Shown here: positions 38,715 to 64,000 of the stretch, piece by piece
Layout: each line of letters opens with the position of its first letter
Numbering within the stretch: the stretch's first letter is position 1
Origin: Rebecca billardiae RCC1528
Lineage: Eukaryota > Protista > Haptophyta
Direction of reading: 5' to 3'
DNA length: 64,000 nucleotides
Assembly (NCBI GenBank): GCA_965240325.2
Contig: OZ251231.1
Span: 1,364,001-1,428,000, forward strand
Notes under the pieces: generated by a model
What the model was told of the DNA's origin: nothing
The model's input: the letters and a program-made list of their open reading frames with translations, nothing else
The model's database searches: none
Program-made: the position numbers and the translations under genes

Positions 38715-38792
38715 TCTATCTGTCTATCTATCTGTCTATCTATCTGTCTATCTGTCTATCTGTCTATCTGTCTATCTGTCTATCTGTCTATC
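38715..38792. repeat. (TCTA/TCTG)n microsatellite
   Basis: Direct reading. Confidence 0.9.
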
Positions 38793-38845
38793 CCTCGCGC
38801 GCGCGCCGATCATCATGCGCCGATCATCGTGTGCGCACCCTATCT

Positions 38846-39340
38846 TCTCCGCGCGTCACTTGCGCCTATCTCATCTCCGCGCGTTACTTGCGCCTACTAT
38901 CTACTTCTCCGCGCGTTACTTGCGCCTGTCTCCGCGCGTCACTTGCGCCTATCTACTTCTCCGCGCGTTACTTGCGCCTACTATATCTACTTCCCCACGC
39001 GTTACTTGCGCCTGTCTCCGCGCGTTACTTGCGCCTATACCTCCTCCGCGCGTTACTTGCGCCTATACTATCTACTTCTCCGCGCGTTACTTGCGCCTGT
39101 CTCCGCGCGTTACTTGCGCCTACTATATCTTCTCCGCGCGTTTACTTGCGCCTATCTTCTCCGCGCGTTACTTGCGCCTGTCTCCGCGCGTTACTTGCGC
39201 CTACTATATCTTCTCCGCGCGTTACTTGCGCCTATCTTCTCCGCGCGTTACTTGCGCCTATCTCCTCCGCGCGTTACTTACGCCTATGCCCTCCGCGCCT
39301 ATCGTCTCCGCGCGCATCTTATTCTCCGCGCGTCACTCGC
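38846..39340. repeat. Minisatellite with constant 20-mer CTCCGCGCGTTACTTGCGCC and 3-14-nt linkers
   Basis: About 16 copies plus degenerate ones; the linkers TGT, TATCTT and TACTATCTACTT recur. Confidence 0.92.
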
Positions 39341-41021
39341 ACCTGTCTTCTCATGCGCGCGCGCCGATCATCATCATGTGCGCGCGCCGATCATCACTTC
39401 GTGCTCAGCGTAACCATCGCATCATCATCCGGGTGCCGAGCGTGCCATCATCGCACACACCTTTCGGCGCGCTTACATGGGCGTACGTGGTGTCTGTGGC
39501 CGGGGCGTGGGGGACGACGTCGTCGGCGGGCTGGCGTTGATACCCGCGCGCGCCGATCATCATTCGTGCTCCGCGCAATAACCATCATCATCATTCGGGT
39601 GCCGAGTGCGCCATCCTCGCGCGCACCTTTCGGCGCGCTTACATGGGTGTACGTGGTGTCTGTGGCCGGGGTGTCGGGGACGACGTTGTCGGCGGGCCGG
39701 CGTTGATACCTGCGCCGCGTGGCGGCTCTGGCGGATGCAGCTCTCGCCGGTCGGCTGCCACTGCAGCGGGGCGCGCGCGCTGCTGGGCGTTTTCGGGCGC
39801 GAAAAGCGACGTGGCCCGCTGGCCACCTGCGGCGCTTTCACCTGGCCTTGGTCTTCCTCGCTCGTCACCTTCTGCGTCGCTCGAGCGCGGACGCGCTCAT
39901 CATCGTCAATCACCTCCTGTCTATCGCTCGAACCGCTGCTTTCCGTTCCGTTCCGTTTCTACGCGCGTTCCTTTCCTCACGCCGAGCGTGCCTGGCCCTT
40001 CCCGCCACGCGCCACGCGTTCCTCTCCCATTCCTGTGCCATCTTCCTCACTCATCACCTCCTGCTTCGCTCGAGCGCTCGAACGTGGTCGCGTTCATCGT
40101 CAATCGCCTTGTGCCTCTCGCGCGAGCCGTTGCGGCGAATTCGTCACGCGCGCGCATGGTCATGCGCGCGCGCCGATCATCGCGTGACGATCATCATGCG
40201 CGCGCACCGACCAGCGCCGATCATCATGCGCGCGCGCCGTCATGCGCGCGCGCCGAGTATCATGCGCCGTTTATCATGCGCGCGCTCCGATCCGCCCGCG
40301 CGCGCACCGCTCATCGTGCGCGCGCACCGATCGTCATTCGTGCGCCGCACGGCCATCACCATTCGCGCACCGTGCGCGTCACCTCGCACGCCCCTTTTCG
40401 GCGCGCTTTCACGGGCGCTCGTGCGGTCTGCAGGCGCGTGGTTGACGACGTTGTCGGCAAGCCGACGTCGATACCTGCGCCTCATGTCGGCTCGGGTGTG
40501 TTCCGCGACGGCTCGGGCGCATGCGCTCTCGCCGGCCGCCGGCGGCGGCGGCGGTGCGCGCGTGCTGCTGGGCGGTTTCGTCGGGCAAGTGGACGGCGTG
40601 GCCTGCGGGTCACCTGCAGCGCTTCGCCTGGCCTGTGCCGGCGCGCGACGACGGGCGGGTTACGCCAGTGGTCCTGTGGTCCGCCGGTCGCTGCGGGCTC
40701 TCGGCGACCTCTGGCAGGGGCTGAGCGCTGGGGGGGAGGGGGGGGGGCACCCAGTCCGCCGCTCCGCGGCCTCACACCGGCGGCGTGCGGCGTGGTGGTG
40801 GGCAGGGCGCTGCGCCTCTGGGGGTCGGGGCCGGGCCTGGCCTCGGCCGCGCCGGCCGACGCCGGCCACGCCGGCGTGGCGCCTGGCGCTGCGCCTCTTT
40901 GGGCGGGCGCTGCCTCGCCGCCCTGCCCCCCCCCGTGGCGACTGGCGGCCCCAGGCAACCCCTGCATCCGCCTATCGTAAACACCGGTTCGCCAGAAGGA
41001 GCGCGACGCGCGCGCGGTTAT

Positions 41022-44964: not shown

Positions 44965-47900
44965 CTAGGGCGCCACGCCCTTGAACGGCGCGCCGCCGTT
45001 GCCGGGCGCGCCGCCGCCGCCGCTGGCGCTCGCCGCCGCGCCGCCGCTGAGCCGCGCGCGCGAGGGCTGCGTGCCAAACATGCGGGCGGAGGCGGCGCGC
45101 ATGTTGTCCATGCGCCTGGGCGGCGAGGACGGCCGCGCCGCGCCGCTCTCCTCGTCGCCGCCGCTCGGCGCCGGCGGCTTGGCGGGCTTCGCGCCCGTCT
45201 TGGCCGGCGACGTTGGCGGCGACGCCGGCACCATCTTGGTGAGTGTGGCGGCGCTGAGCCCGTCGGCGCGCGACGCGTCTCGCTGCCGCACCATGTTGCG
45301 GACGAGGCGCATGCGCACGCCGGCCGAGCGCTTGCGCAGCCGCGCGCGCCGCTGCGACTCGAGCAGCGACTCGCGCAGCGCGTGCGCCACCTCGATCGTC
45401 GACGCGTGCATGTGCACGCCCGGCCGGAGCACCGGCGGGTGCGTCTCAAAGAGCACGCGCGCGAGCCCGTCCGCGCCCCACTTGGCCGGGACGAAGGAGC
45501 GGCGGATGTGCTCCCACGGCGCGTAGAGCGGGTCGTTGGTGTCATGCAGCAGCACGGGCAGCACCGGCAGCTTGGGCGGCAGCCCGTCGCCCACCGACGA
45601 CGACGCGTCCGTGCCGTCGTCCAGCTCCTCAGAGTCCGGCTCATCGCGGATGCCCGCGACGGCGCACGCGTTGGCAAGCGTGCGCGCGAGCTGCGGCGAG
45701 CGCGGCCAGATGAGGAGCACAGGGCCGTTGGTGTGCGCCTGCTGCGGCGGCTGGGAGCCGCCACCGCCGCCGCCGCCGAAGAGCCCGCGGCCGCTCGGCG
45801 CCTCCGACCGCTTCCCGCCCGCCTTACCCGCTTTACCCAGCTCGTACGGCGCGCACGCGCGCACGGGCTTGGTCAGCAGCGCGGCGATGTGGGCGAGCGG
45901 CCTGGGCTCGGCGTTGGCGACGTGTTCCTCGTCGCGCTCCTGCGTCGTGCAGGGCGGCGCGCGGCGCGGAGGAGGGCGCGCGGTGCGCGTGCGCGTGAGC
46001 GCGTGAGCGCGCACGCGCGGGGCGGGCGGGCGGGCCGCCGCGCCGCCGCTTCGTCCGTCTCGGTCGGCGCGCGGGCGTGTGCGCGCTGCGCCGCCTTTGG
46101 CTCAAAGCGCCGCGCCGCCGCGCGGCGGCCTCGGCGCAGCGCGCCCCCGCTCTCGCGCGGCGCGGCGGGCGCGGCGGGCGCGGCTTCGCACCTCGTAAAA
46201 CTCGCAGCGCACGGCGCGCACGCCCGAGGTGAGCAGCTGCGGCACCTGCGCGGGCGGCACGACGGTGGCGTCGTCGCGCCGCGCGGACGAGTTGCCGCCG
46301 GCGATGCTCGAGCGGCGCGCGGAGACACTCGGCCGGTGCGGGCCGGCGCGGCCCGGCGGCTGCGGCGGCTGCCGCGCGCCGCCGCCACCGCCGCCGCCGC
46401 CCTTCTCGGTGGCTGCCGGCTTGTCGGCGCCGCCGCCCTGCCGCCCGCCCCCGCCGCCGGGCGCGTGCGCCGCGTGGTGCGCGCCGCCCATCAGCAGCGC
46501 CGAGAGCGTCTTCATGTCGCGCTCCTGATACGCCGCCTTGATGCGCCCGAGCCGCCGCTGGTCGGTAACCACGACGCCGTAACCGAACGCGTCCGCGCGC
46601 AGCAGCAGCAGCGAGTTGCCGCCGGGGGGCGGCGGCGCGGAGCGGCCGGGCTGCGGCACGGCGGAGCCCGGCGCGGCGAACGTCGCGAGCAGCGGGTCCT
46701 CCTCGGGCGCGAAGCTCGCGGAGAGCTCCGCGGTGAGCGGCACGAGGTGGCCGAGCTCGGGCGGCGCGTCGAGCGCCGAGCCCGCGCCGCGGCCGCGCAG
46801 CCGGTTGGCGTAGGCGGTGAGCACGCTCGCGGCGCGCGCGAGCCACGGCGCGCGGCGCCAGAGCGGCGCGAGGCGCGCGTACCGCGTCGAGACGGCGTGC
46901 ACGGGGATCGACGCGGCCGCGTCCTCGCGCAGCAGCGCGTGCTCGAGCACGGCGCGCAGCGGCGCCGCCTCCGCCTCCTCCTTGTCCGCCTTGAGCCCGA
47001 TCTGCAGCGTGCGCGCCTCGCCCTCGATCTCGCCCAGGTGCGGCTTGAGCCCGCCCGCGCGGCGCAGCAGCTGCGCGGCGCGCAGGTGCTCCGCGATCGC
47101 GAGCGCGGAGGCGGAGAGGTACGCGTCCTCATCCTCCGGCCGGCCGCCCTGCGCGTGCCACGGGATCATCGCCGCGTCCGGCACCGCGTCCAGCAGCGCC
47201 GCCGCCGCCGCCGAGCCCGACTCGGCGCACTGCGCGCGCAGCTGCTCGATGGTCACGCCGCCGCGCGAGGGCTTGGCGACGTACACCACCACCACCTTCT
47301 TGTCCGGCGCGAGCTGCGCCGCCTGCAGCTGCGCGAGCGCGCCGCCGTCGGCGGTGAAGTAGCCGTCGGAGATGAGCACGATCACCGCGCGCGCCTGGTC
47401 CATCCGCTCGCGCCATTTCTTCCCGGACTGGCCGATCACGAGGTCCGGGACGAGTGCGCTCACGCGCTCGCGCAGCTCGTTGGCGGGCTGCTGCCCCGAG
47501 TGCCACGCGTACGAGAGGAACGCGTGGCACCCGCCGGCGACCTGCTCGTCGAGCCGCGTCGCGCGCATCCGCGTCTTGTCCAGCCGGTCGCGCAGCACGG
47601 GCAGCTGCCGCTCCTGGTACGCGCGCCAGGGCAGCAGCAGCACGGCGGTGAGCAGCACGAGCACAAAGATACCGGTCAGGTACGCGCCCAGAATAGACTC
47701 GTACAGCGAGAGCCGCAGCCCGCCCTCGAACAGCGCCTTGGCCGACCACGCGTCGAAGCCGGCGCGGAGCGAGAGATTGTCCGCACCCTCCGAGCCCGCG
47801 GTCAGGTGCACGGCGAGGGCGCCCACGAGCATCAGCTGCATCGCGAGCTGCGCGACGAGGACGGGGTCGTTGTCGAGCGCGGACTGGAGCGGCCGGATCC

Positions 47901-50900
47901 GCGCGAGCACCGCGACGAACACCGACTGCACGAAGATCGCCGTGAGCAGCTGCGCGACCGACGCGTACGACGACGCGTCCGCGCCGCCGCCCGAGTTGGG
48001 CGCGGCGCCGAGCACCGCCACCCGCACCAGGATCACGCCGCCGACGAGGACGAGCTTGCGCAAAGTCTCCACCGCCTCCCACCAGACGGTGTGCGGCGCG
48101 AGCCCGACGCGGATGAACGAGAGCGGCGACTGCCCCGCCACCCACTCCGAGTCGTCCCTGAGCAGCACGCGGTAGAAGGCGTACGGCAGCGCGACCGAGT
48201 AGACAAACATCGCGATGTACGCAAACGGTAGGTACGCCTCGTGCTCGGCCGAGTCGAAGTCGACGGAGTAGTCGGACTTGAGCACGCGCTTCGGACGGCT
48301 CGCCTCGACGTCGACCGACTCCGTGTTCACCGCCGAGAAGAGCGACGCTGTCGCGGAGGGCAGGATGAGGTACGCGCTCATCAGGAACGGGCGGAGCACC
48401 GAGCCCACAAAGTCGCGCCGCTTGTCGAACAGCTTGGAGTGGTGCCGCGCGCGGTGGTACAGCTCGAAGAGGAGCCACACGCCGCCGAAGACGGAGAGCA
48501 CGCCGAGCGGCGCGAGCGCGATCCCGACCATCCCCGTGTGGTACCCCACGCCGATGCAGTTGAACCCGTTGAGGTACAGGTTGTCGAAGGCGAGCCAGCG
48601 GAAGCCGCCGAGCGTCTCGCGGAACGCGACCGGCAGCGTGACGCCGTACACGCGCTCGAGCAGCAGCGTGAGCTGCACGAACGCGAGCGTGGTGCGCGCC
48701 GCCACCTTGAACGAGACGACGACCGCGGGCGTGACCGCGCCCGCCAGCGCCACCTTGAGCTGCGTGAGCAGCTTGCGCGACGGCTTGGGCTTCTGCCCCG
48801 GCTTGTGCCCCTTCAGCCAGCGCGCGAGCGCGGCCATCTTCTCGTCCATCCGCCCGTGGAAGCTCGCGATGATCAGCACGACGCACACGAGCGAGAAGCC
48901 GATCATCAGCCCAAAGACGAGCTCCGCGCGGCGCGTCGCCGCCGGGCAGCGCGCGCATCGGTCGTCCGTGCCCATGAAGAAGCTGCGCGCGCGCGGGGGG
49001 CCGGCGGTCAGGCTCGCGATTGGCGCGCGGCCGGCGGCACGCACGCACGGCACGCGCGGCCGGCGGCACGCACGCGCTTGCCGCGCGCGCGCGCGCACCC
49101 GGGGTCGCACACTTCGCAGTACGGCCCACCGTGGTGCTCGGCGCACAGATCGCCGCTCTTGGCGCCCTTTGAGCCCGGGCACGCGCGCTCGCCGCGGCCG
49201 CACTCGCGCAGGTCTGCCGTGTCCTTGGAGTTGCGCCAGAAGCCGGGCTTCACCTCGAGCGTGGCGAGCGTCGAGCCCACCCTGTCGCACGTGACGGACG
49301 CGTTGCACGCGAAGCAGATTCGGTTCGACTCGTTGTACTTGCGCTCGTAGTACCCCTGCTGGCACACGCAGCCCGCCTCGGCGTCCGTCCCCTCAAACTC
49401 GGTCGTCATGAACGGGTCCACGTCCGTGCACTGCTGGCACACGTCGTTGTCGTCCGCGTCGTCCGCCGTGCGGAACGTGCCGATCGGGCACGGCTCGCTG
49501 CGCGAGGAGCGGCGGCGCCGACGCCGCGCGCACGCGGCGCGCGCGGGCGGCGGAGGGCGGACGCACGCTGAGCGCGAGTGCGCCCGCCGCGCGCTGGCCG
49601 CCGCCCGCCCAGAGGGGAGCACTCCACCGCGCGGCGCGGCGCGCGCACCAGGGCGTGTTGCCCGTGCGGCCGAGCCCGGGCGGGCACGAGCCTCTGTACG
49701 TGAAGAGGCCGCTCGCGAACGCGTCCTGCGCGCCCGTCTGGTTCTTGACGATCCGGATCGACGGCACGTCGGCAAAGTCGTTGGTGGGCTTGGGCGGCGC
49801 GACGCACCACGCGAACTGCGGCGAGATGATGCCGGGCTCGGCGCACGCCGCCTGCGCGCCCGTCGCCTCGTCCACCAAGAAGATGGTGATCTGGTCACAC
49901 GGCACGTCGCACGCGTCGCCAAAGTTGGCGCCCTGCAGGAAGAGCGGGCCCGGGTCGTTGGGGTTGAACTCCTGCGCGTTCAGGATGAGGTTGACGACGG
50001 CGGAGGGCGGCGGCGGCGAGGGCGGCGGCGGCGAGGGTGGCGGCGAGGGCGGCGGCGAGGGCGGCGGCGAGGGCGGCGGCGGCGAGGGCGGCGGCGAGGG
50101 CGGCGGCGAGGGCGGCGGCGAGGGCGGCGGCGAGGGCGGCGGCGGGCTCGGCGGCGGGCTCGGCGGCGGGCTCGGCGGCGGCGGGCTGGGCGGCGGCGAG
50201 GGCGGTGGCGAGGGCGGCGGCGAGGGCGGCGGCGTCGGCGGCGGCGGCGGGCTGGGCGGCGGGCTGGGCGGCGGGCTGGGCGGCGGGCTCGGCGGCGGCG
50301 AGGGCGGCGGGCTCGGCGGCGGCGAGGGCGGCGGCGGGCTGGGCGGCGGGCTGGGCGGCGGGCTGGGCGGCGGCGAGGGCGGCGGGCTGGGCGGCGGGCC
50401 GGGCGGCGGCGAGGGCGGCGGGCTGGGTGGCGGGCTGGGCGGCGGCGGGCTGGGCGGCGGGCTCGGTGGCGGCGAGGGCGGCGGGCTGGGCGGCGGCGAG
50501 GGCGGGCTGGGCGGCGGGAACGGCAGGCCGCGCGGCGGCGGCGGCGGCAGCGGCGGCGGGCTGGGCGGCGGGCTGGGCGGCGGGCTGGGCGGCGGGCTGG
50601 GCGGCGGCGGCGGCGGGCTCGGCGGCGGGCTCGGCGGCACGTTGAGCAGCGCCACATTCTGCACCGTCGCGCCCACCGCCTGCTGCAGCGCCGTGTTGTC
50701 CGTCTGCTCGACGGCCGCCACGACGTCCACCGGGTTGGGCTCGTCCGCCGGCTGGTAGATCTCGACGTCCACAACCGTCGAGCCGCCAGCGACGGCGATG
50801 ATCCGGATGCGCGTCTCGTCAAAGTCGCAGCCGCACTCGGCCGAGAGCTGCGCGTCGATGAAGGCGATCAGCGCCGCCTCCTGCGTGGCGTTCCACGTGC

Positions 50901-53900
50901 CCACGTCCACGTCGAACTCGTACGAGATGATGATGATCTCGCCCGGAGGCGGCGGCGAGGGCGGCGGGTGCGGCGGCGGGCTGGGCGGCGGCGAGGGCGG
51001 CGGGGTCGGCGGCGGCGGCGGCGAGGGCGGCGGCGAGGGCGGCGGCAGTGGCGGCAGGCTCGGCGACGGCGACGGCGGAGGGCTCGGCGGCGGCAGCGGC
51101 GGCGGGAGCGGCAGCGGCGACGGCGGTGGGTTCGGTGGCGGCGGGCTCGCGGCCGGGACGCTTGCACCCAGCTTGAGCATGTACACAGTGTCGTGGCCCG
51201 GTGCGCTCACGGCGGCGTCCGCTTGCCCGTCGCCGTCGAGGTCGCCGAGCAGCGCAGCGCCGTTGCCGAAGAAGTCGTCCGCCGAGAGCGGCGAGCCGAA
51301 GCCATCCGTCCCGTTGGTGATCAGCTCAGACTGGCGCACCGTGCCGTCCCTGCGGAGGTAGAGCACGAACGCCGAGCCCGTGTTCCCGTCGTAGTTCGGA
51401 GCTCCGACGAGCGCATCGGTGATGCCGTCGCCGTCAACGTCCTGGCCGGCAGAGACGGAGCGCCCAAAGAGGCTGACTCGGTCGAGCCCTGTCACGCCGC
51501 CTCCGGCAGTCGCCGACACCTTCTGCGCACCCTTGAGCGTGCCGTCGGCGCGGAGAAAGAGCGTGTACACCGCGCCGCGCTGCGGGGCTCCACCGTCAGC
51601 GTCGCTGCCCGCGCCGACCATCACGTCAGTCACGCCGTCGCCGTCGAGGTCGCCGTGCGAGGCGCAGCCGTCGCCAAACCCGAAGACACCGAACGGCGTG
51701 GGAGCCGCGCCATCAATCGTCGCGAGGCTGTGCACGACCTCCGACTTGACGGTGCCGTCGCTGTGGAGGAAGAGCACAAGCACGCTGTACGCACCCCCCA
51801 TACCGACGAGCGCATCTGGCACGCCGTCGCCGTCCAGGTCGCCGATGCCTGCTGCGCACGAACCGAGTCTGTCGTAGTCTTGCAGGGCGTAGCTCAGCCC
51901 GCCCTCTGTGCTCGAGATCTTGCTCGACGCCTTGAGGGTGGCGTCCGCGTGCATGAAGAGCACGTACGCCGCGCCGCGAGCAGTGCCGCCACCAAGGTCC
52001 GCAAAATCGCCGGCCATGATGTCGGGCACGCCGTCACCGTCCACATCGCCGAGCGCACCCAGACCAATGCCCAGCCAAATGCTGCCGTCGACGACGAGCT
52101 TCGTGTCAGCCTTGACGGTGCCGTTGGCGTTGAGCAGCAGCAAGAATACCTCGCCCACGGTGTCACTGCTGCCCACGAGGAGGTCGGGCACACCGTCGCC
52201 ATCAAAGTCGCCCAGCGGCTCGAGCGTGTTCCCAAACGCGCCCGCTGAGGCAGGGCCGACGAAGCCGCCTTCGGTGGGCGAGATGCGCACGACCGACGCC
52301 ACTGTCTCGGGCGGAGACGGCGGCGGGCTCGGCGGGCTCGGCGGCGGGCTTGGCGGCGGCGGGCTCGGCGGCGGGCTCGGCGGCGCCCTCGGTGGCGGCG
52401 GGCTCGCGGGCGGGACGCGAGCCCCGAGCTTGAGCATGTACACAGTCGTGTCGCCAGGTGCGCTCACGGCAGCGTCCGCTTGCCCGTCGCCGTCGAGGTC
52501 GCCGAGCAGCGCAGCGCCTGTGCCGAAGGTGTCGTCCGCAGAGAGCGGCGAGCCGAAGCCCTGTGTCCCGTTGGTGATCAGCTCAGACTGGCGCACCGTG
52601 CCGTCCCGGCGGAGGTAGAGCACTATCGCCGCGCCCGTTCGCCCGCCGTAGTGCGGAGCTCCGACGAGCGCATCGGTGATGCCGTCGCCGTCAACGTCCT
52701 GCCCGGCAGAGACGGAGGTCCCGAAGAGCATGTTCACCTGGTCGAGCCCTTCCACCGCGCCCCCCACTCTCGAGTTCGACGACACCTTCTGCACACGCTT
52801 GATCGACCCGTCGGTGCGCAGAAAGAGTGTGTACACGGCGCCGGCGCCGAGGTTTCCGACGTTGTCGCCGGTCGCTCCGACCATCACGTCAGTCACGCCG
52901 TCCCCGTCGAGATCGCCGTGCGAGGCGCACGAGCTGCCGAACGAAGACAACGAAAGCGCAGACGGGTCAATCGACGTCACGTTGTGCACCACCTCCGACT
53001 TGACGGTGCCGTCGCTGTTGAGGAAGAGCACAAGGACGCTCTCGGTCCCCAACTCACCCACGAGCGCATCGGGCACGCCGTCGCCGTCAAGGTCGCCGAG
53101 GCGTGCGACGCACGAGCCGAAAAGTCCAGAGTCCTGGAGGGCGTGGCTCAGCCCGCCCGCTGTCTCCGAGATCTTGCTCGACGCCTTGAGGGTGGCGTCG
53201 GCGTGGAGGAAGAGCACGTACGCTGCACCGCGAGCGCTGCCGCCGTCACCGAAGTCCAGTATGTCGCCGGCCATGATGTCGGCCACGCCGTCGCCGTCAA
53301 CGTCGCCGAGCGCATCCATGCCGTAGCCCAGCCAGAGACTGCCGGCGACGGCGAGCTTCGTGTCCCGCTTGACGGTGCCGTTGGCGTTGAGCAGCAGCGC
53401 ATACAGCTCGCCGCGTGGGTTGTTCGTGCCCACGAGCAGGTCGGGCACGCCGTCGGCATCAAAGTCGCCCAGCGGCGCGAGCGTGTACCCAAACGTGCCC
53501 TCCGAGGCAGGGCCGACGTAGCCGCCTTCGGTGGGCGAGATGCGCGAGAGTGACGCCACCGTCTTGGGCGGAGACGGCGGCGGGCTCGGCGGCGGGCTCG
53601 GCGGCGGGAGCGGCCTCGCGGCCGGCGGCACCGCGGCCGGCGGCACCGCGGCCGGGCTGGGTGGCAGGCTCGGCGGCGGGCTCGGCGGTGGGCTCGGCGG
53701 TGGGCTCGGTGGCGGGAGGCTCGGCGGCGGCGGGCTCGGCGGCGGGCTCGGTGGCGGGAGCGGCCCCGCGGCCGGCGGCACGGCGGCCAGGCTCGGTGGC
53801 AGGCTCGGCGGCGGGCTCGGCGGTGGGTTCGGTGGCGGGAGGCTCGGCGGCGGGCTCGGCGGCGGGCTCGGCCCCGCCGCCGGCGGCACCGCCCCCGTGC

Positions 53901-54210
53901 CGGGTGGCAGGCTCGGCGGCGGGCTCGGCGGTGGGTTCGGTGGCGGGAGGCTCGGCGGCGGGCTCGGCGGCGGGTTCGGTGGCGGGAGCGGCCCCGCGGC
54001 CGGCGGCCCCGCGGTCGTACTCGGTGGCAGGCTCGGCGGCGGGCTCGGCGGCGGGTTCGGTGGCGGGAGCGGCCCCATGGCCGGCGGCGATTGGCCCTGC
54101 GCTCCGATGACTATGGCGGCGAGGACCGTGAGCGCCGCGAGCGCCTGACGGCCACGACTGGACGGTAGCCCATGCACCAGTCTACCGCGGACGTTGTGTT
54201 CATGGCGCAT
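44965..54210 (-). CDS. Giant receptor-like protein (~2,908 aa): signal, Pro-rich, 2 x FG-GAP propeller, extensin-like stalks, Cys-rich repeats, multi-TM, TIR-like; introns 49498-49648, 48983-49098, 45940-46191
   Basis: Repeated FG...GDLDGDGVPD.LVG motifs and SPPP arrays; CP.G.F/CVCQQGYY/GPYCEVC Cys motifs; at least seven hydrophobic helices with WWEAVE..RKL; HAFLSY...AVIVLISDGY TIR-like segment. Three GT-AG introns join four ORFs in frame (8727 nt). Confidence 0.8.
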
Positions 54211-55402
54211 CAGCTCGAGGCCCTCGTCGGCAGCACCGCGCCGCGTGCACTGTCGCGTACGCGAGCGACCACAATTTTGGTCGCCCCGAGCCTTCGCTCC
54301 TGCGGAGATGCACCTCACGCGCACGGCAAAATGTTTCGCGCGGCGTGAGCGCTGCTCCGGCTCCCCACACGCTCGTCGCGCTCGCGCATCGGGGTGGAGG
54401 ACTGTGGTTGATTGATGATTGGCCCAGGCGTGCTGATCATGATTCATGAGGCTGCCGCCATATTATTCGGGCGAACAAAGAAGCGAGCGTTGAAGAGCGA
54501 GATGAGTACAGTATTGCACATAACTACTAGTATGAGATTCTTTCTTTCGTGAATAGCATATGAGCATACCTGAGATGGGTACAGTCAATATGCACCATTG
54601 GTCCGTTTTGAGTTCACACCACTTCGAGCCCATAGACGTATTTCATTACCGCTCATCAGCGGTAAAAATAAACTGTATGTAGTCTGAACACTGATTATTA
54701 TTAGACAGGTGAAACTCAGGCTTGATGGAATCGGGCGAATCCTCTCACGACGTGAACCTCGCGAGGTGGACGAGGCTGAAATTATGGCCCCTCGTCGACT
54801 TGTCGCCGACGAGAGGGCAACCTCGATCGTGATGTGCCTGGCAGCAGCCGTGCTTGCGAGCGCGCCTTGTGTACTGGGTGCGCCGTTGACCACAAACTCG
54901 GCAGCCCGCCCGGGAGGCGCGGAGGGCAGGGCCAGCAGTGTTGGGATCGTTGGCCGGTCATGCGCACGCGGAGGCTCGACCTGTTGGTCGGAGGCCGGCC
55001 TGGGCAGCGGCTGGGCGCTCATCATGATCTGAATGGCGACTCGTGCGCCGTCTGCCCGTCGTCTCCAAAGAGCTAGCATCAGTGTTGCCGCCATCAGTCC
55101 GTTGATAATACTACGACGACCGTGATGATGATCAGATCGATCGATACTGCTACTACTACTATATATATATACACGACTCGGCCGGTACAGTATACGTTAT
55201 ATATATATATACTACAGTCGGAGTCTAGCGCAGCTAGTCGCGTAGTATTGCACAGGCAGACTGGCGAAGGCCGACGAGAGCAGGCTGCATAGTGCATGCG
55301 CTGCGTGCGCCACCGCGCAGCCAATGTGAACGCAACGCCTTTTTCTCGCCCAGGCCGCGGCACGGGCACTCGGCTCTGTACATCTGCTGCAGCGCGGCGC
55401 CC

Positions 55403-58400
55403 TCACACGCGACCCAGACTGTCGCCTTCTGCGCTCGTCGATGCCGCCGCCGCCGCCGCCGCGCCCGTGCCACAGCCGCGCAGGCGGAACATGCTGCCCG
55501 ACGACGAGCTGAACGCCGCCCGCGCGGATGCTCGTGCGCGGCGTTGCGACGGGCTGAGGGTGCCCGGTCTGGGCGGTGCGTGCCCGCGCGAGGCGCGCTG
55601 CACGCGCACACGCTTGTCCACGTCACCCGCGTTGCGCGCCTCCACGCGCAGCCTCGGCGGCAGCGCGCGGCGGGCGTCCCCAGCGCCGCGCGGCGCGGGC
55701 GCCCGCTCCTCCCAAGGCAGCCAGCGGCACAGCGTGCTGTGAGTGCCGCCGATGGGCCGCAGGCTGTGCAGCACGGCCCGCACCTGCGCGTACTGCAGCT
55801 CGGAGCTGCCGTGCGGCGCGAACGGGAGCGCGATCACCTTGAGCACGTGCTCGAGCGCCGCCTGCACCTCGGGCGGCGAGATCCCGTGCCGCTCGAGGTA
55901 CGCCCAACCCTTGGCTGAGAAGACGGCTCGGCGCTGCAGCTGCTCCATCCACGCGGCGCCGTACGCGCTGAAGTCGAAGCCGCCGCCGATCGCGAGGATG
56001 GGCACGGTGTGCACGCCGAGCTTGTGCGCCAGCGCAATCGTGCACACGCTCGGCGCGTCCTCGAACAGGCCGGCGCCGAGCAGCACGAGCAGGTTGGGCG
56101 CGGACGCGAGCCGGGTCACTCGGTCGCGGACCCAAGCCTCAGCGCTGCCGAACGGGCCGGCCTCTGCTGATCCAGCGCCCTCCGCTTCCGTGCCGTCGGC
56201 CTCCGAGCCGCCGGGGCGCGGGGAGCGGCGGAAGCCGGCCGCGCTCAGGTGCGCAGCCGGCGCGAGCACGGAGCGCGCGCCCGCTGCGCCCAGGTGCGCG
56301 ACCGGCGCGAGCACGGAGCGCGCGCCGCGCTCCGCAGCGCTCGTCACCGCCGCGAGCCCGCTCGCAAAGTCGCTGCCGCGGCGCTCGGCCGCGGGCGCGC
56401 CCTCGGGCGGCGGCGGTGGCTGCAGCGGCGGCGGCGGCGGCAGCCCGTCAGGTGGGAGTGGTTCCATCGGAGGATGCCGCGGTGGCGATGGCGTCGGCGG
56501 CGCCCCCTCCGATTGCAGTGCCTCGAGCGGAGCGAGCCGCTGCGGCTGCGGCTGCGGCGGCGGCGGCGGCTGCGGCGGCGACAGCGGTGGCGGTGGCTTG
56601 AGCGGCGGCGGCGGTGCGGCCACCGCGTCAGCCGCGGGCCCCACGCACGCGCCGCACGAGGCCTCGCCGCCCTCCCCACCCTCGCCATGCCGCCGCTCCT
56701 CCTCCGGCAGCCGCCACTCGCGCTGCGAGAGCGCGAGCACGCCGCGGTACGGGGCCATCAGCCGGCGCGCGCCGTACCGGTGGTGGACGGCGAGGATGAG
56801 CTTGATCACGTGCGCGTTGCACAGGTCCCGGGGCGAGCAGACGAGCAGCGCGAGCGTCGAGCTCAGCTCGGACGGCCCGAGCGACGGCCTGATCCACCGG
56901 CGGCACACCGGCGCCGTGTTGAGCTCCAGCGGCGCGCTCGCGAGCACCTGCGCGCGCGCGTCGCTCAGAAAGTCGGCACGGAATCGCATGAGCGCGGCCG
57001 CCGCGTTTGGCTGCACAAAGTCGGAGTAGGCGGGGCGCTGGGTGCGGGGCGGCGCCGTCGTTGCGGCCCGCGCCGCCGCCGCGGGCGCGACGGCGCGCCG
57101 CCCGGCCTCCTCCGCGCCCGCGCTCTCCACCGCGAGCTCGCGCACAGCGCCGCGCGCGCTCGCTGCAGCCCGCTTTGGCCGTAGGCGCGGCCGCGTGACT
57201 GGCGACGGCCGCGGCCGCGTCAGCGAGGCCGAGCGCGGCTGCGCGGAGCCGAGCTCGATGACGCGGCGCGCGATGCGCTCGGCCTGCGCCCACTGCCGCT
57301 CCTCCGGCCCGCTCCGCTCGAACTCGAGCCTCGGCTCGAGCGCCGAGAGCGACGCCAGCGCCTCGCGCACCTGCGGCTCACTCGCGCCCGTCTGCTCGGT
57401 CACGATGCCGAGCCCTTCCGCGCCGAGGGCGGCGAGGGTGGCGGAGATGGCGTCGGCGTGGGCGGGCGGGAGGTGGAGCGGCGCGCGGCGGCACGCGGTG
57501 TCGTACATCCACACCGGCACGAGCGGCTTCCCCAGCATCCACGCCGCCACCACCTCGCACATCACCCACGGCCGGTGCAGCACGCTCGGCGAGCACAGCA
57601 GCACGACCACGCGCGAGCGCACCACCGAGCGGAGCAACTCGCTCAGGTCGACGAGGTCGTCCGAGTCGAGGAAGATGGGCACGGTGGGCGGCGCGCCCGC
57701 GCGCGCGGCCGCGCCCGACCCTTTCGCCGGCAGCACGAGCTGGCGCAGCAGGTGCTTGAGCAGCCGCGCCGCGTCGCCCTCGTCGCCCTTGTAGTGAGAC
57801 AGGAAAATGCACGGCGGCATGTTGGCCGGCGTGGCGCGCGACTCGCGCGCGTGCACGTCGGCGAGGGTGCGCGTGCGCTCGCGCACGGCGCGCGCGAGGA
57901 GCGGCGTGCACACGCACGCGCACGCGCACGCGCCCAGCGCGAGCGCGATCAGCGTGAGCGCCGGCAGCTCGGTCACCACGCGCACGCCACCCGGCTCGGC
58001 GTCGGCGGCCTCGTCGGCGCCGCTGTTGCCGCCGCCGCGGCTGTCGTCGGGCGCGGCCGCGACGTCGGGCTCGACTTCGTACTCGGCGGACCACCAGAAG
58101 CCGAGCGGCATCATCTCCCGCTCGGGCGGGTACTGGCTCTTGTCTGTCTCGAAGTGCACGAGCACGCCGCGCTGCTGCGCCGGCGGCAGCGCGCCAAACA
58201 GCGCGTGCGAGCGCACCGCCTCGGCCGCGGCGCCGCCGGGCGCGAGCAGCTCGGCCGCTCCGAGGAAGAGGGTGGTCGGGCTGGCGCAGTCGACGCCCCA
58301 GAAGCCGGGCCTGCACTCGCACTGCCCCGGCGTGCCCGTCGCGTAGATCGCGTTCGCGCACACGCCCTGGTTGCGGCACTCCTGGTCGGCGAAGCAAAAG

Positions 58401-61203
58401 TCGCCGCCTCGCCACACCAGCCCGACGTGCGTGACGGATGCGGACAGGTCGGTGACGACCGTCGCGTCGAGGAAGGGCTCGGGCCGGTAGCGCGCGGCGT
58501 CGAGCAGGCCGAAGCGGAGACCGCGGAGCGCGCGCGGCGCGCCGTCCGCGCGCGACGACGCGACCGTCGCCGGCGGCGCGATCGCCCAGCGGCAGTCGAG
58601 CGAGTGCCAGTTGGTGGCCGCGGCGGCGCCGCCCGCGGCGCGCTCGGCTGGCGGCCACGACCAGAGCTCGCCCTCGCGCGCCGTGTGCAGCACGGGCAGG
58701 CCCGGGAGGCACGCGGCGGCCCAGCAGTTGTCGCCGTACCGGCCCGCGTCGCACTCGCACGTGCCGTCCGCGCGGCACGTCCCCGCGCCGCTGCACACCT
58801 CGCCGCCCGCCGCCTGCGCGCACCCGGCGCCGCCGGCGTCGCGCGCCCAGAAGCGCGCGTCGAAGCGCGAGGGCGCCGACACCTCCGAGGCGCGCAGCGT
58901 GAGGAGCATCTCGACGCGGCCGTCGGGGCTGCCGCCGCCCGCCGCGGCGGCGATCTCGAGCTGCAGCCGCGTCGGCGAGATCGCCGTGGGCAGCTCGTGC
59001 CGCGAGAAGTTGCCCGAGAGCGAGACGACGAGCGCGTCGAGCAGCGGCGCGCGCCCCGCGTACACGTTGATGTGCGCGGCCGACGGCAGCACGTCGATGG
59101 CGTCGAAGTCGAGGACGGGGAGCGAGCCGGGCGGCGCGGAGAGGACCCAGCGGCACTCAGCCGTGCGCAGCGCCGCGTACCCCGGCAGGCTGTACGACCC
59201 GTCCGTCAGGCCGTACGCCGCCTCGCCGGGCGCGCGCCGCGCCTCGACCGTGCCCATGCACCGGCCCGCGCCGCACGCCGAGCCGTAGAAGCCGCCGTCG
59301 CACTCGCACGCGAGGCCGTCGGGCGCGCACTCGCCGTGGCCGCTGCACGAGGCGGCGCGCGAGACGCACGCGGACGCGCTCACGTTGAGCGCCACGCCCT
59401 GCTGCACCCAGCCGCCCAGCGGCTGGTACACGTGGTCGTCGAGCTGCAGCACGATCAGCAGCGGCGGCGGCGCGAGCACGGCGAGAGGCGCGAGCACCGC
59501 GCGCGAGTCCTCGCCGCGCTCGGCGGCGCGGGCGGAGATCATGCCGGTGTAGTCGGCGACGAGCGTGGCGTTGCCCGCGCGCGCCGCCTGCGCCGCCGCC
59601 CACGCCTGCGCCACGCCGTCGCGCGCCTGCTCCGCCGAGAGCTCCACGCGCGCGGCCGCGAGCGCGCCCGGTCCGGAGAAGACGCGCAGCGTGTCCGTCA
59701 GCACATCGAGCGCGAGCAGGGAGAGCTCGACGCGGACGAGGTCGGCGGCGGAGGCGCGGACGAGCACCGCGCAGGTGCGCGCGGTGCGGTTGGACGCGCT
59801 GCTCGCGAGCATCGACACCCAGTGCGCGCCGCCCACCGACGCGCCGCCCAGCTCGAGCTCGGCCACGTGCGCGCGGTTGCAGCCGGCGTCGTCGGCGCCG
59901 GCCGCCAGCGGCGCGCCCTCCGAGTCGGAGAGGCTGAGCCGCTCGAGGAGCGCGTCGGACGGCACGGGCCCGGCGAGCTCGGCCGCCTCGGGCAGCCCCT
60001 CCAGCCGCGCCTCCAGCGCGGCGCGCACCCAGCGCGCGTCAAACCAGCCGGCCACGTCCTCCCCCGCGCGCCTCGCAAGCAGCTTCTGCTCGAGGATGAA
60101 GTCGAGGACGTTGGCCGCCTCGGCGAGGAGGCCGGCGCCGAACCACGCGGCGGAGAGCTGCGTGCGCGCCGAGACGAACGTGTACTGCCGTAGCCCGATC
60201 GGCTCGTCGCGCACCATCGCGCGCGCCTCCGCCTCCTCGGCGGCGGTGAGGTTGAGCGTGCGCGCGCTCACGTTGAGCGCGCGCGCCAGCCAGCGCTGCG
60301 CGTCGACGCCCGCGCGCCGCCGCCCTGCGAGAGCGCGTCGGCGTGCCGGCGCGCGTGGACGAGCGCGGCCACGTTGAGCGCCGCGGCCCCCTCGAACACC
60401 GTCCAGCCCGCGCGCGCGCCGCCCTCCTCCTCCTCGTCCCCGCCGCCCGGCAGCTCCCACGCCATCGGCTCGACGCGCAGGCTGCGCTCCGCCGCGTCCG
60501 CGACGCGGACGAAGCGCTGGACGGCCTCGGGGTGGTCGCGGGCGAAGGCGTCGCGCGCGACGACGATGTTGAATGCGCGCCGCCCCCACGCGCCCAGCTG
60601 CCCCGACGTGATCACCACGTGCCCGCCCGCCCTGGTCACGTGCTCGAGCGCCGTGCCCCACGTGAACGCCGCGTCGATCTCGCCCTCGTCCCACGCGCGC
60701 TCGATGGCGTCGGGGTCGAGGAAGCGGATGTCGACGCGCGACGGCGGGATCGAGAGGATGTCGAGCAGGAAGAGCAGGTGGTAGTGCACCGTCGAGTGCC
60801 GGCTCACAGCCACCACCTTGCCGCTCAGGTGCGTCGGGTTGACGATGCCCGAGCCCGCGCGCGCCACGAGCGCGGACGTGCCGCCCGCCTCGGAGAGGAT
60901 GTATATGGCGGTGAAGCGCAGGCGACGCGCGGTGCCGAGCACCCACGGTGGGCTGCCCACGACCGAGATGTCCAGGTCCTCCGCCTGAAGCATCGCGTTG
61001 GCATGAGCCCCCGTCTGCATGTTGTAGAACGAGAAGCGGTACGAGTGGTTGGTGCCCTCGAAGTCGAGGAGGCGGTACGTGGCGATGGCGGCGAGCGGGG
61101 TGGTCTCGGAGAAGAAGGCGCCCACGTTCACGCGCACCACGCCCGCAAGCGCCACCGCCGGCGCGAGCAGCAGCGCCACGCCGCGCAGCATCCCACCGCG
61201 CAT
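55403..61203 (-). CDS. Single-pass receptor (~1,907 aa): signal, TauA-like substrate-binding domain, CUB-like/EGF modules, TM, TIR, degenerate second TIR; probable intron 60296-60372
   Basis: GSPP...ALVAR...LSGKVVAV...STVHYHL...AWDEGEIDAAFTW resembles TauA/SsuA. Three EGF motifs (CECDGGFYGSAC, CECDAGRYGDNC, CECRPGFWGVDC) and CUB-like CRW segments. TM at ~57896-57960, then IFLSHYK...IFLDSDDL...VVVLLCSPSVLHRPWVMCEVVAA. Confidence 0.82.
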
Positions 61204-61454
61204 GATACCCGCCCGCGGTTGGAAGGGTGTCGGACGGACAGCTGGTGAGCGCAAGGCGAGCCGAACCGACGTCGTAGAATGGCGGGCCATAATTCTACAG
61301 TACGTGTCTTCGGCGCGATCTCGATCTCACCAGCCTGAGATCGCCCTTGCCAATCTGAAATCGAGCCGGATCTCTCGGGTGGGGAAAGGGGAAGGTGTCC
61401 TGTCCAGCGGAGGACAGGGCGGTGGCAACGGCGTGCAGAACTCGGCTCTCGGCA
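61204..61454. promoter_or_regulatory. Putative bidirectional promoter
   Basis: 251-bp gap between the divergent ATGs at 61203 (-) and 61455 (+). Confidence 0.45.
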
Positions 61455-64000
61455 ATGTCGACTGCATGCGTGCACACCCTGCCCGGTGGCGGAGAATGTT
61501 CATGCGTGGCGATCTCCGTGGCCGACGGCGGCTGTCGCTGGGCTGTGGCCGTGCGCGGCGACCAATATCTTTGGCTCTACGACCTGCAGGCGGGCAAACT
61601 CGTGCGCACGATTGATGCCGGGTTTGGTGCGGGGATAACGTCTCTCGCACTCTCGAGCGCCGACGGGGGCTGGCGTTGGGTCGTGTGTGGCAATGGTCGT
61701 GGCGATCATTCTCGTAGTGGCTGGGTCTGGCTCTGGGACCTCGAGTCTTGCACGCGTGTGCTCGAGTTCGAACCTGAGTTCGATTCCAGTTGCTGCAACC
61801 GTCCATTGGGAGTGGCACGGCTGGCGATCTCTGCTGCGGACGGTGGTGCTCGATGGGCCGTTCGCTTGACAGCGCGCGAGCCGCAGTGGCTCGATTTGCA
61901 GTCGGGCGAGAGGAAGCGCATGCACCTCCCGTCTGACATGAACTGGGGGGGCAGGGACTACAAGTCGTGGTGGGGGGCGCCAGCAGGAGGACGCTGGCAG
62001 GTCCTCTGCGACCCCCACAAGAGAGACCAGCTCTCCGTCTGGGACCTGGAGCGCCTCACGCAGGTGTGCGTGATCCAGAACGACGTCAAGATGATCGCTC
62101 ATCAGGTGCCGATCTCCATCGTGGACGGGCTGTGCCGCTGGGCTGTGTCCACGTGCGAGCAGAGGCGGCTCTACTTGTGGGACCTCTCCTCGGGCGCGTG
62201 CGTGCGCTCGGTCGACGCCGACAGAGGCAGCGGCGTGACCAAGCTGACGCTCTCCGACGCCGATGGCGGCTGCCGCTGGGTGCTGTGCGGCACAGCCAAC
62301 GGCCAGTTGGGGCTGTGGGACATGCAGGCGGGCGAGTGTGTGCGCACGCTCGAGGGCCACACGGGCGCGATCACAGAGCTGCAGTTCTCGAGCGCGGACG
62401 GCGGCTGCCGCTGGGCGCTATCCGGATCGCAGGACGGCACTCTGCGGCTGTGGTCCCTCGCCATGCCCACCCGCGCTGCGCGCCCGATATGCGGGCTGCC
62501 AGTGCGACCATGTGCTGGCGTGGTCGAGGCGATGGATGCGCTGAGGTGGGCAAGCGCGCGCGCGCGCAAGGCGCTCTCGGCCGCTCTGGACACGATTCGC
62601 GCGCGCACCAACGGGAAGAGCCCGCCCGACGTCACGCTGATCAAGCGACGCGACGCGCTGCGTGCCGAGCTGTGCGCCGCCCTCGAGGCGCAGAGCGCTT
62701 CGGCGCGAGCCGCGCTCGCCGACGCGCGCGCGCAGGCGGAGGCTCTGCGAGGCGAGGCGCGCGCGCTGCTCGCCGCGCTCGAGCTGAGCGAGACGGCCGC
62801 GGAGCCGCTGGCGTCTGGGGCGACGCTGGCATCGTCGCTCTCCCTGTGCATCGGCCGCGCCATCCGCGCGCACGACCAGGCGTCAGCAGCTGACCTCGCT
62901 GGGCGTGGGGCCGTGAGGGCCGCTTGGCACGCGGTGCACGCGGCGGTGGCGCTCGCCGCAGCCGCGGCGCACACCAGTCCAGGGAACTCGGCACTCGCGT
63001 CCGCGTGGGCGCGGGCCATCCCCATACTTCACGCGGCTGTGGCAGCGCCTGCGGCTGAGGCCTCGCTCGCCGACGTAGCTCTCGCCCACGCGAGCGCGTG
63101 CGACGAGCTCGCGGCCACGGCGGACGCCGCACGCGGCCTCGCTCGCGAGGTGGCCAGCGAGGCGGAGGCGGAGCTGCGCACGGCGCGCGCGCTGCCGACG
63201 ACTGAGATCGCGCACGGCCTGGAGCTTCGCGAGAGCGAAGGCGCGGCGCGCCGAGCGAGGCGCGCGCTCCGCGACGCACGGCGCACGCTGGAGGACGCGC
63301 ACGAGGACAGCGGCGACGTCGACGCGGCGCAGCGAGCGCTCGTCGACGCACGGCGCGCCGCGCAGCGCGCGCAGCGCGTACACGAGGCAGCCGTCGCGCG
63401 CCTCTTCGAGTGGGCTGCCGGACCGTTCCCCGAGCTGCCGGGCATTCTGCCTGAGATCTTTGGCGGCGGCGGGGAGGCGCTGCCGCCGGGCGCGCGCGCC
63501 GGCCTGCTGCACGGGCGCTCGCTCGAGCAGTACGAGCGCATCACGTGGCCCGACGGCGCGGAGCCGCCGCGTGGGCGGCACGAGGTGCTGCCGTGCACGT
63601 ACGCGGCCGAGCGCGTCGTGCTCAAGGCGTACCCGCTGGCGCGCGACTCGGAGCGGCGGGCGCTGGAGCGCGAGGCGGCCATCGTGCGCGCGCACCCGCA
63701 CCCACACGTCGCGCGCGTGCACGGCGTCTTCAGCTGCGCGCCCAGCGGCGCGGCTGAGTGGCGCGCGTACGTGCAGACGCCCCTCTACTCGGGCGGCGCG
63801 CTGAGCGGCTGGCTCGAGCGCGAAGCGACAGCGCCGCCCGAGGCTGTGCGCGGCGTGGCGCCCTGCGCGCTCCTCGACCCGAGCCATGCGCGCGTCGCCA
63901 CCACGCGCGTCTGCGCGCTGCGCCACCTCGTCGCCGCGCTCGCGCATCTGCACGCGCACGGCATCGTCCACGCCGACGTCAAGCTCGAGAACGCCTTTGT
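61455..64000 (+). CDS. WD40-repeat, helical region, protein kinase (truncated by the window end; absent from the ORF track because it has no stop)
   Basis: The frame from ATG 61455 gives LWLYDL, VWLWDL, LSVWDL, LYLWDL, LGLWDM and GHTGAIT...SGSQDGTLRLW. It then gives kinase motifs VVLK, LEREAAI..HPHVARVHGVF and IVHADVKLEN (63963-63992), in the same frame. Confidence 0.85.
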   Translation, partial: MSTACVHTLPGGGECSCVAISVADGGCRWAVAVRGDQYLWLYDLQAGKLVRTIDAGFGAGITSLALSSADGGWRWVVCGNGRGDHSRSGWVWLWDLESCTRVLEFEPEFDSSCCNRPLGVARLAISAADGGARWAVRLTAREPQWLDLQSGERKRMHLPSDMNWGGRDYKSWWGAPAGGRWQVLCDPHKRDQLSVWDLERLTQVCVIQNDVKMIAHQVPISIVDGLCRWAVSTCEQRRLYLWDLSSGACVRSVDADRGSGVTKLTLSDADGGCRWVLCGTANGQLGLWDMQAGECVRTLEGHTGAITELQFSSADGGCRWALSGSQDGTLRLWSLAMPTRAARPICGLPVRPCAGVVEAMDALRWASARARKALSAALDTIRARTNGKSPPDVTLIKRRDALRAELCAALEAQSASARAALADARAQAEALRGEARALLAALELSETAAEPLASGATLASSLSLCIGRAIRAHDQASAADLAGRGAVRAAWHAVHAAVALAAAAAHTSPGNSALASAWARAIPILHAAVAAPAAEASLADVALAHASACDELAATADAARGLAREVASEAEAELRTARALPTTEIAHGLELRESEGAARRARRALRDARRTLEDAHEDSGDVDAAQRALVDARRAAQRAQRVHEAAVARLFEWAAGPFPELPGILPEIFGGGGEALPPGARAGLLHGRSLEQYERITWPDGAEPPRGRHEVLPCTYAAERVVLKAYPLARDSERRALEREAAIVRAHPHPHVARVHGVFSCAPSGAAEWRAYVQTPLYSGGALSGWLEREATAPPEAVRGVAPCALLDPSHARVATTRVCALRHLVAALAHLHAHGIVHADVKLENAF

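Follow-up and report, generated by a model that had tools for sequence, protein, structure and literature searches.

Two LRR-free receptor genes, A and B, of a GC-rich alga, probably a haptophyte, are neighbours on the minus strand towards the end of the window (the whole 64-kb stretch of DNA analysed), and a third gene, C, lies divergently on the plus strand. Gene A is assigned to 44965–54210 (ATG 54210; stop 44965–44967) on the basis of minus-strand codon-position GC periodicity throughout, overlapping or abutting open reading frames (ORFs), and putative GT–AG introns that join them in frame. Gene B (55403–61203, minus strand) is predicted to encode a type-I receptor in which a TauA-like solute-binding domain and EGF repeats are followed by one transmembrane (TM) helix and two TIR domains (TIR1 and TIR2). 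Gene C (plus strand), of which the part from 61455 to the window end (64000) is present, combines a seven-blade WD40 domain, a helical linker, and a kinase. The divergent intergenic region of B and C (61204–61454) leaves 251 bp between their start codons (ATG 61203 and ATG 61455, respectively). Genes A and B are arranged in tandem and are separated by approximately 1.2 kb of lower-GC intergenic DNA containing a TA microsatellite, and are therefore counted as separate genes. Their adjacency holds only if the FG-GAP ORF at 49396–54447 is part of gene A, which the overlapping ORFs and the putative GT–AG introns indicate.

The original prediction had described two adjacent minus-strand genes with different ectodomains, receptors without LRRs, and a WD40-protein kinase beginning 251 bp from gene B on the opposite strand. 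We find the same arrangement: Pfam and PDB matches give FG-GAP/extensin for A and TauA-like/EGF for B, the Pfam families returned for the receptors are FG-GAP, NMT1/TauA-like and EGF, with no LRR, and Pfam WD40 and Pkinase matches are found in the frame that starts at ATG 61455. Its coordinates were all recovered on re-reading, including those of the Glu of the WVMCE motif in gene B (57554–57556), the GALAQ motif in gene A (47329–47343), and the 251-bp B–C spacer. Further neighbours in the window are mixed (a histidine kinase, URO-D, and a zf-MYND protein); the region beside gene A, from 36.5 to 45 kb, consists of tandem repeats in which neither a Pfam family nor a signalling gene was found.

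Gene B: a TauA-like ectodomain and tandem TIR domains

The N-terminal part of gene B (60373–61203; all features of this gene are on the minus strand) comprises a signal peptide, recognised as a hydrophobic N-terminus, and a solute-binding domain matching PDB, TIGRFAM, and Pfam entries. The closest of these are a taurine-binding protein (PDB 6ssy; E 6e-26), TIGR01729 (E 8.2e-41; 140 bits, under the equivalog cut-off of 304), and Pfam NMT1 (E 5.7e-8). Judged by these matches, the ectodomain is homologous to TauA/SsuA and is TauA-like, rather than an equivalog. A putative 77-nt intron (60296–60372), read from the sequence, lies 3′ of the TauA-like segment; it is followed by EGF-like repeats (58724–59359; Pfam EGF_2, E 1.3e-6, three stretches) and by a single TM helix (57893–57967), located by a hydrophobicity scan.

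TIR1, together with a helical extension, occupies 57251–57850. As an isolated domain it scores 27.3 bits (E 5.7e-6) with Pfam TIR_2, for which the cut-off is 28, and the same family is matched at E ≤ 1e-3 by 64 of the 103 aligned relatives. A word-indexed homology search with the TIR region of gene B gave no match, and NCBIfam and PADLOC returned weak ThsB hits only; its relatives at E ≤ 1e-3 amount to 632 cluster representatives. The Trp and Glu of the W-x3-E motif, which belongs to helix alphaC, are invariant in the alignment of 103 sequences (A1), and the Glu that the original prediction had placed in WVMCE is read directly in the gene B ORF. The AlphaFold2 (AF2) model of TIR1 (pLDDT 86.3, pTM 0.84) has the flavodoxin-like alpha/beta TIR fold, with a Foldseek probability of 1.0 to the TIR domains of L6, RPS4, RPV1, RUN1, and SARM1. 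In VIA-align the best match is the TIR domain of human SARM1 (Z 15.2, rmsd 2.2 Å, 27% identity over 128 residues), and the structural ranking places SARM1, TIR-1, RPS4, RPV1, and RUN1 above TLR2 and MAL (Z 11.3–11.6).

The superposition on the SARM1/TIR-1 NADase domain and the retention of a catalytic-type Glu suggest that TIR1 is SARM1-like and probably enzymatic. That the TIR domains of TLR2 and MAL also align to TIR1 is what favours regarding it as a non-enzymatic scaffold of the type found in animal TLR/MyD88, which would recruit adaptors without NAD+ cleavage. We consider this unlikely, as the top structural matches are enzymatic TIRs (SARM1 and those of plant NLRs), the Glu is invariant across the 103 relatives, and the 64-kb window showed neither an adaptor gene nor one with a death domain. 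The suggestion that the TIR domains of this locus might act as a scaffold recruiting a kinase, in the manner of TLR–MyD88–IRAK, is likewise disfavoured by the greater proximity of TIR1 to enzymatic than to scaffold TIRs, and by the lack of IRAK-like character in gene C (see below).

The second TIR domain (55757–56854) was identified with the family profile A1 and is split by a Pro-rich insert of approximately 250 residues; its C-terminal half scores 49.6 bits with that profile. The catalytic Glu is absent from TIR2, the aligned position (56039–56041) being occupied by Thr. The tandem TIR arrangement is also found in three relatives of gene B (P0001, P0002, and P0004).

Taken together, these features suggest that gene B may encode a one-component chemoreceptor, in which the EGF repeats and the single TM helix would connect an external TauA-like domain to the paired TIR domains. 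The TauA-like domain probably binds a small ligand, possibly of the sulfonate type, and ligand-driven clustering would assemble TIR1 into an active oligomer that cleaves NAD+ or produces a signal nucleotide. TIR2, in which Thr replaces the Glu, would serve as an intrinsic partner in regulation or assembly.

Across bacteria, plants, and animals, immunity is tied to NAD+ signalling through TIR domains. Compared with SARM1, gene B has no ARM or SAM domains and is predicted to be membrane-anchored with an extracellular sensor. Roles for TIR domains in marine microalgae are only starting to be described, and so far concern virus resistance in Gephyrocapsa huxleyi. TM-TIR receptors are, as a class, already known from that species: cogent1101_i1, for example, has a ligand-binding/EGF ectodomain, one TM helix, and a TIR domain with a conserved Glu that resembles those of RPS4 and SARM1 (PMC12489294). 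Gene B shares with these receptors the order of ectodomain with EGF repeats, TM helix, and Glu-bearing TIR, as well as the absence of LRR and NB-ARC domains, but differs from them in its TauA-like ectodomain and in its second, Glu-less TIR; no relative above approximately 40% identity was found, and gene B is therefore not an orthologue of a G. huxleyi receptor. It is a well-supported case of a SARM1-like TIR combined with a bacterial-type small-molecule binding domain and a built-in degenerate second TIR, and suggests that algal TIR receptors may sense dissolved metabolites besides pathogens.

Gene A and its TIR-like tail

Gene A appears to be a single very large gene, whose product would be a multipass membrane glycoprotein with a tail resembling a TIR domain. 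Its ectodomain (49396–54210; all features of this gene are on the minus strand) combines a signal peptide with Pro-rich, extensin-like spacers and with FG-GAP repeats in two duplicated blocks (Pfam FG-GAP, E 8.4e-46, eight stretches; FG-GAP_3, E 8.7e-35); tandem Pro-rich repeats lie at 50009–50609 and 53575–54069. A Cys-rich exon (49094–49496) follows, flanked by putative introns at approximately 49497–49626 and 48984–49093, where the frame switches at GT...AG boundaries. A Kyte–Doolittle scan locates a multipass TM core of eight to nine hydrophobic segments (47638–48921), and the TIR-like domain (TIR-A; 46987–47556), which carries a Gln codon (47329–47331) in GALAQ, is placed directly after the last of them. 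The last exon (44965–45939) would be joined by a 252-nt intron (45940–46191; GT at 46191, AG at 45940), the removal of which eliminates an in-frame stop (46102–46104); the frame is the same on either side and coding periodicity continues. Pfam finds no family in the Cys-rich exon, in the last exon, or in the segment between TIR-A and the stop codon.

The protein may be pictured as a giant surface protein of the adhesion type, in which extensin-like stalks carry FG-GAP propellers and are followed by a Cys-rich region and the multipass core. Uncharacterised haptophyte clusters in the ESM Atlas with Ephrin_rec_like and TIR_2 domains likewise have a TIR_2 tail that comes after a Cys-rich region and membrane segments. 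Gene A differs from them in its additional FG-GAP/extensin ectodomain of approximately 1,600 residues and in its degenerate TIR; the likeness is one of architecture.

The original prediction gave both receptor genes a cytoplasmic TIR-like domain. For gene B this stands, given the confidence of the fold and the matches to solved TIRs; for gene A the case is weaker, with TIR-A below every curated threshold. Pfam TIR_2 scores 17.5–21.4 bits with TIR-A (best E 3.8e-4; cut-off 28 bits). Matches were absent from PDB sequences, PADLOC, and NCBIfam, and word-indexed homology searches, with the TM core plus tail of gene A and with TIR-A alone, found no homologue. The domain was therefore folded without an alignment, and the resulting single-sequence AF2 model has a pLDDT of 51. 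Threading TIR-A onto the alignment of the gene B family for a better model was dropped, as it would bias the fold test. GALAQ had been described as lying at the helix equivalent to that of WVMCE; the hhalign profile alignment does set its Gln opposite the Glu of gene B, though at a probability of 1.5%, which marks the alignment as weak.

On this evidence, the tail of gene A might not be a TIR at all but a generic alpha/beta segment with a chance likeness to one, in which case the locus would hold one TIR receptor. The low TIR_2 scores, the absence of matches in sequence databases, the hhalign result, and the low-confidence model all favour that possibility, as does a profile of the gene B family that performs no better on TIR-A than on shuffled sequences; a weak VWA similarity was also seen. 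We nevertheless think it improbable. No Pfam family other than TIR_2 comes close to significance, and the match covers profile positions 2–98 of 122; the language-model neighbours of TIR-A in the ESM Atlas are haptophyte TIR clusters (similarity 0.94, 172 shared features); and even the unbiased low-confidence model retrieves the plant TIRs RUN1 and L6 as its top Foldseek matches (probability 0.84–0.94, E 0.015). The position immediately after the TM core is, moreover, that of TIRs in related architectures.

With a TIR-like tail retained as the preferred reading of gene A, its relation to the TIRs of gene B was considered. A distant paralogy between the two was rejected: phmmer against 150 relatives gave no TIR-A hit, and the HMM of the gene B family scored −1.7 bits, below shuffled controls. 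By sequence comparison, then, the TIRs of genes A and B belong to different families. The catalytic Glu is replaced by Gln in TIR-A, and the motif Arg and Trp are also missing; without these three residues, invariant in the gene B family, TIR-A is most likely non-catalytic and would serve as an interaction surface.

The WD40-kinase gene and the relation between the three genes

The propeller of gene C (61455–62462, plus strand) has an ADGG(C/W)RW-type insert in each blade and matches Pfam WD40 (PF00400) at 29.7 bits (cut-off 27), along with many other beta-propeller families; the repeats are visible in the translation. An Ala-rich linker (62463–63608), helical as judged from the translation and matching no Pfam family, leads to the kinase N-lobe and catalytic loop (63609–64000), which are cut by the window end and match Pfam Pkinase at 28.3 bits (partial) and PK_Tyr_Ser-Thr at 23.6 bits. 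The Lys of VVLK is present, and HAD replaces HRD (63969–63992), making this a non-RD kinase, a type over-represented among innate-immune kinases. Its closest solved relatives are a MAPKK-like protein (PDB 9gmp; E 4.2e-9), then CAMK-type kinases. As far as the sequence up to the window end goes, with the C-lobe lying beyond it, the kinase is without IRAK/Pelle features, having a WD40 N-terminus instead of a death domain. The product of gene C would be a cytosolic WD40–linker–kinase; the gene itself is separated from the divergently oriented gene B by a short intergenic region.

We infer that no functional link joins A, B, and C, and regard it as probable that they are separate genes that are neighbours by chance, B encoding a chemoreceptor, A an adhesion-type protein, and C a cytosolic kinase. 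Two observations run against independence: the divergent spacer of 251 bp would allow B and C to share a promoter, and a Glu-bearing TIR adjoining a Glu-less TIR is the pattern of paired plant immune receptors. In the RPS4/RRS1 pair, too, the genes are adjacent and only one of the two TIRs has the Glu, and the RPS4 TIR is among the top structural matches of TIR1. Genes A and B differ from that pair, however, in having no NB-ARC or LRR domains, in lying in tandem rather than head-to-head, in the different families of their TIRs, and in the degenerate TIR present in cis in B. The predicted head-to-head pairing applies to B and C, not to A and B.

It was proposed that the locus forms a sensor/executor/kinase system. 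In its fullest form, the tails of A and B would make up a TIR heteromer, with a Glu-less sensor or regulator and a Glu-bearing executor, and the WD40-kinase, co-transcribed from a shared promoter, would act downstream or as a regulator. The Glu/Gln dichotomy between B and A, the head-to-head spacing of B and C, and the non-RD character of the kinase are in keeping with such a module, which we nonetheless judge to be quite improbable. With the Glu-less TIR2 in cis, gene B needs no partner encoded by another gene; A and B, in tandem order, are separated by intergenic DNA of their own; and the kinase of gene C has neither a death domain nor IRAK-like similarity. Furthermore, neither Pkinase nor WD40 is fused to a TIR of the gene B type in any of 62 long relatives, in which the attached domains are Ion_trans (22), cNMP_binding (15), an ammonium transporter, a sugar transporter, and PDZ. 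No death-domain TIR adaptor was found among the larger ORFs of the 64-kb window. A metagenome scan for an orthologous locus returned two weak loci and no orthologue; the contigs of relatives were single-gene and transcript-sized (1.6–3.7 kb).

A more specific version, in which A is an adhesion-type sensor whose dead TIR gates the SARM1-like, metabolite-sensing TIR enzyme of B, with the non-RD WD40-kinase as a dedicated regulator of an LRR-free, NLR-free Toll-like haptophyte circuit, is the least probable reading.

The likeness to Toll/TLR–MyD88–IRAK signalling extends to a type-I receptor with a cytoplasmic TIR (B) and a kinase gene nearby. The differences are the absence of an LRR ectodomain and of a death-domain adaptor, a WD40-linked kinase that is not of the IRAK type, and a TIR nearer to enzymatic TIRs. 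A TIR–TIR–kinase module would, if true, amount to an independent invention of Toll-like wiring; it is not supported here, and the locus is therefore best used as a source of single constructs, for NADase activity and for ligand binding.

The gene B receptor and its TIR family

Gene B, a minus-strand receptor gene, is predicted to span 55403–61203. A hydrophobic signal peptide opens its N-terminal ORF. This ORF and the main one, of 1,847 codons, overlap in different frames; a predicted 77-nt GT-AG intron (60296–60372, minus strand) would join the two exactly in frame. The solute-binding ectodomain (60373–61203, minus strand) has matches to TauA, the taurine-binding protein of E. coli (6ssy; E 6e-26), to TIGR01729 (E 8e-41, under the equivalog cut-off) and, within the N-terminal ORF, to Pfam NMT1 (E 6e-8). 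It is a bacterial-type, TauA-like taurine/sulfonate-binding domain, and gene B may encode a receptor for a dissolved sulfonate. The main ORF contains EGF_2 repeats (Pfam) and a single TM helix (57893–57967, minus strand), after which lies the first TIR domain, TIR1 (57251–57850, minus strand).

The TIR identity of gene B is strongly supported. Isolated TIR1 scores 27.3 bits against Pfam TIR_2 (cut-off 28), and 64 of 103 aligned relatives match this family. An exhaustive HMMER search of a 1.84-billion-protein library returned 632 cluster representatives at E ≤ 1e-3, from which the 103 aligned relatives were taken; no protein in the library exceeds approximately 40% identity. The AlphaFold2 model built from the 103-relative alignment (pLDDT 86.3, pTM 0.84) retrieved only TIR domains in Foldseek, plant NLR TIRs and SARM1 ranking first (probability 1.0). 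Superposition on the human SARM1 TIR with VIA-align gave a Z score of 15.2 and an rmsd of 2.2 Å at 27% identity; TLR2 (Z 11.6) and MAL (Z 11.3) came out lower than the enzymatic TIRs. The glutamate of the WVMCE motif, which the original prediction had singled out in one TIR, is Glu99 of TIR1; together with Phe60, Asp62, Arg93, Trp95 and Ala103 it is invariant across the 103 sequences.

The TIR1 family profile also scores 49.6 bits on a second, C-terminal TIR of gene B, TIR2 (55757–56854, minus strand), which carries Thr where TIR1 has the catalytic-type Glu. TIR2 is split by a Pro-rich insert of about 250 residues, which is probably disordered; a 45-bp tandem repeat lies inside it at 56234–56335. 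This tandem-TIR tail is shared by several relatives.

In G. huxleyi, genes have been described whose products combine a ligand-binding/EGF-like region outside the cell with a TM helix and a TIR inside it; their TIR keeps the Glu and is RPS4- and SARM1-TIR-like, and some of these TM-TIR genes are induced within 0.5 h after virus addition (PMC12489294). Gene B is a new, divergent member of this receptor group, in which a TauA-like sensor is combined with a tandem TIR.

Among 62 long relatives, the domains attached to the B-type TIR are Ion_trans (22) and cNMP_binding (15), with single cases of an ammonium transporter, a sugar transporter, an isochorismatase and a PDZ domain. The family is a general tail of membrane proteins. 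Often the B-type TIR forms the C-terminal end of an ion channel of voltage-gated type that also has a cyclic-nucleotide-binding domain (relatives P0001–P0150, alignment A2). Literature searches directed at TIRs in haptophytes yielded no paper on channel–TIR fusions in protists.

The TIR-like segment of gene A

Gene A, encoding a giant multipass membrane protein, is predicted from four ORFs at 44965–54210 (minus strand). Its 1,684-codon ORF combines extensin-like Pro-rich repeats with an FG-GAP block present in two copies (Pfam E 8e-46), and overlaps with a Cys-rich ORF and a 1,087-codon multipass ORF. Two short predicted GT-AG introns (about 49497–49626 and 48984–49093, minus strand) would join these in frame, whilst a third of 252 nt (45940–46191, minus strand, also GT-AG) would remove the sole in-frame stop ahead of the last ORF. 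Minus-strand coding periodicity is unbroken along the gene, and the four ORFs probably form a single gene. The FG-GAP block of about 400 residues is duplicated internally at 51150–53550 (minus strand), with SPPP-type extensin-like repeats separating and flanking both copies.

Eight to nine hydrophobic segments precede the TIR-like segment, TIR-A (46987–47556, minus strand), for which TIR_2 is the only Pfam family near significance (E 3.8e-4, 21.4 bits, profile positions 2–98 of 122). TIR-A scores 0.94 to haptophyte TIR_2 clusters in the Atlas, and language-model neighbours of both TIR-A and TIR1 are haptophyte protein clusters. Taken with the identity ceiling of about 40%, this makes the source probably a haptophyte whose close relatives are not represented by sequences in these collections. 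The single-sequence AlphaFold2 model is of low confidence (pLDDT 51); its best Foldseek matches are the RUN1 and L6 TIRs (probability 0.84–0.94). No sequence matches were found in PDB, PADLOC or NCBIfam. This evidence, consistent but weak, makes it probable that TIR-A is a TIR. Gene A resembles uncharacterised haptophyte clusters combining Ephrin_rec_like and TIR_2.

Membership of TIR-A in the B-type family was rejected, its profile score being no better than that of shuffled sequences. An hhalign alignment of low probability (1.5%) sets the Gln of GALAQ against the catalytic-type Glu; the motif's Arg and Trp are likewise missing. If a TIR, TIR-A would be non-catalytic.

Gene C and the proposed three-gene module

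Gene C starts at 61455 on the plus strand, divergently from gene B, and continues to the end of the window; the two ATGs are 251 bp apart, as in the original prediction. It encodes seven WD40 blades (61455–62462), an Ala-rich helical linker and the first ~130 residues of a kinase, including the VVLK lysine. A conserved ADGG(C/W)RW insertion recurs in every blade and makes for an unusual repeat signature. The catalytic loop (63969–63992, plus strand) has HAD for HRD (a non-RD kinase). The nearest solved structures are the MAPKK-like protein 9gmp (E 4e-9), then CAMK-type kinases; 9gmp shares the non-RD state (HGD). In the Atlas, the closest cluster (0.90) is a WD40 + Pkinase family of fungi, and no death domain or IRAK-like similarity was detected within the window.

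The observation of two TIR receptors beside a WD40-kinase was confirmed; the assignment as TIR is firm for gene B and probable for gene A. That the three genes form a functional, Toll-like sensor/executor/kinase module, as originally proposed, is not supported and is judged unlikely: every indirect test points away from it. TIR-A and the gene B TIRs are unrelated at family level, and so are not a duplicated pair; a Glu-bearing and a Glu-less TIR are already paired in cis within gene B; and neither a kinase nor a WD40 domain is attached to the B-type TIR in any of the 62 long relatives. Genes A and B are in tandem, with about 1.2 kb of lower-GC DNA containing a TA microsatellite between them. 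Other genes nearby are of mixed kinds: a histidine kinase ORF (HisKA + HATPase_c; 33688–35637, minus strand) about 9 kb from gene A, a zf-MYND protein, and a uroporphyrinogen decarboxylase (URO-D) gene (25634–27188, plus strand), whose two overlapping ORFs in different frames imply an intron. Slightly less likely still is a full LRR-free circuit, in which a dead TIR of gene A would gate the TIR enzyme of gene B with gene C as dedicated regulator.

GC content is 60–80% across the window, and the genes show strong third-codon-position GC periodicity. A non-coding tandem repeat cluster at 37580–39715 (a 409-bp unit ×2 at 98% identity, a 23-bp unit ×13 and a 166-bp unit ×2) lies within a strongly AT-skewed stretch with no Pfam-recognisable ORF.
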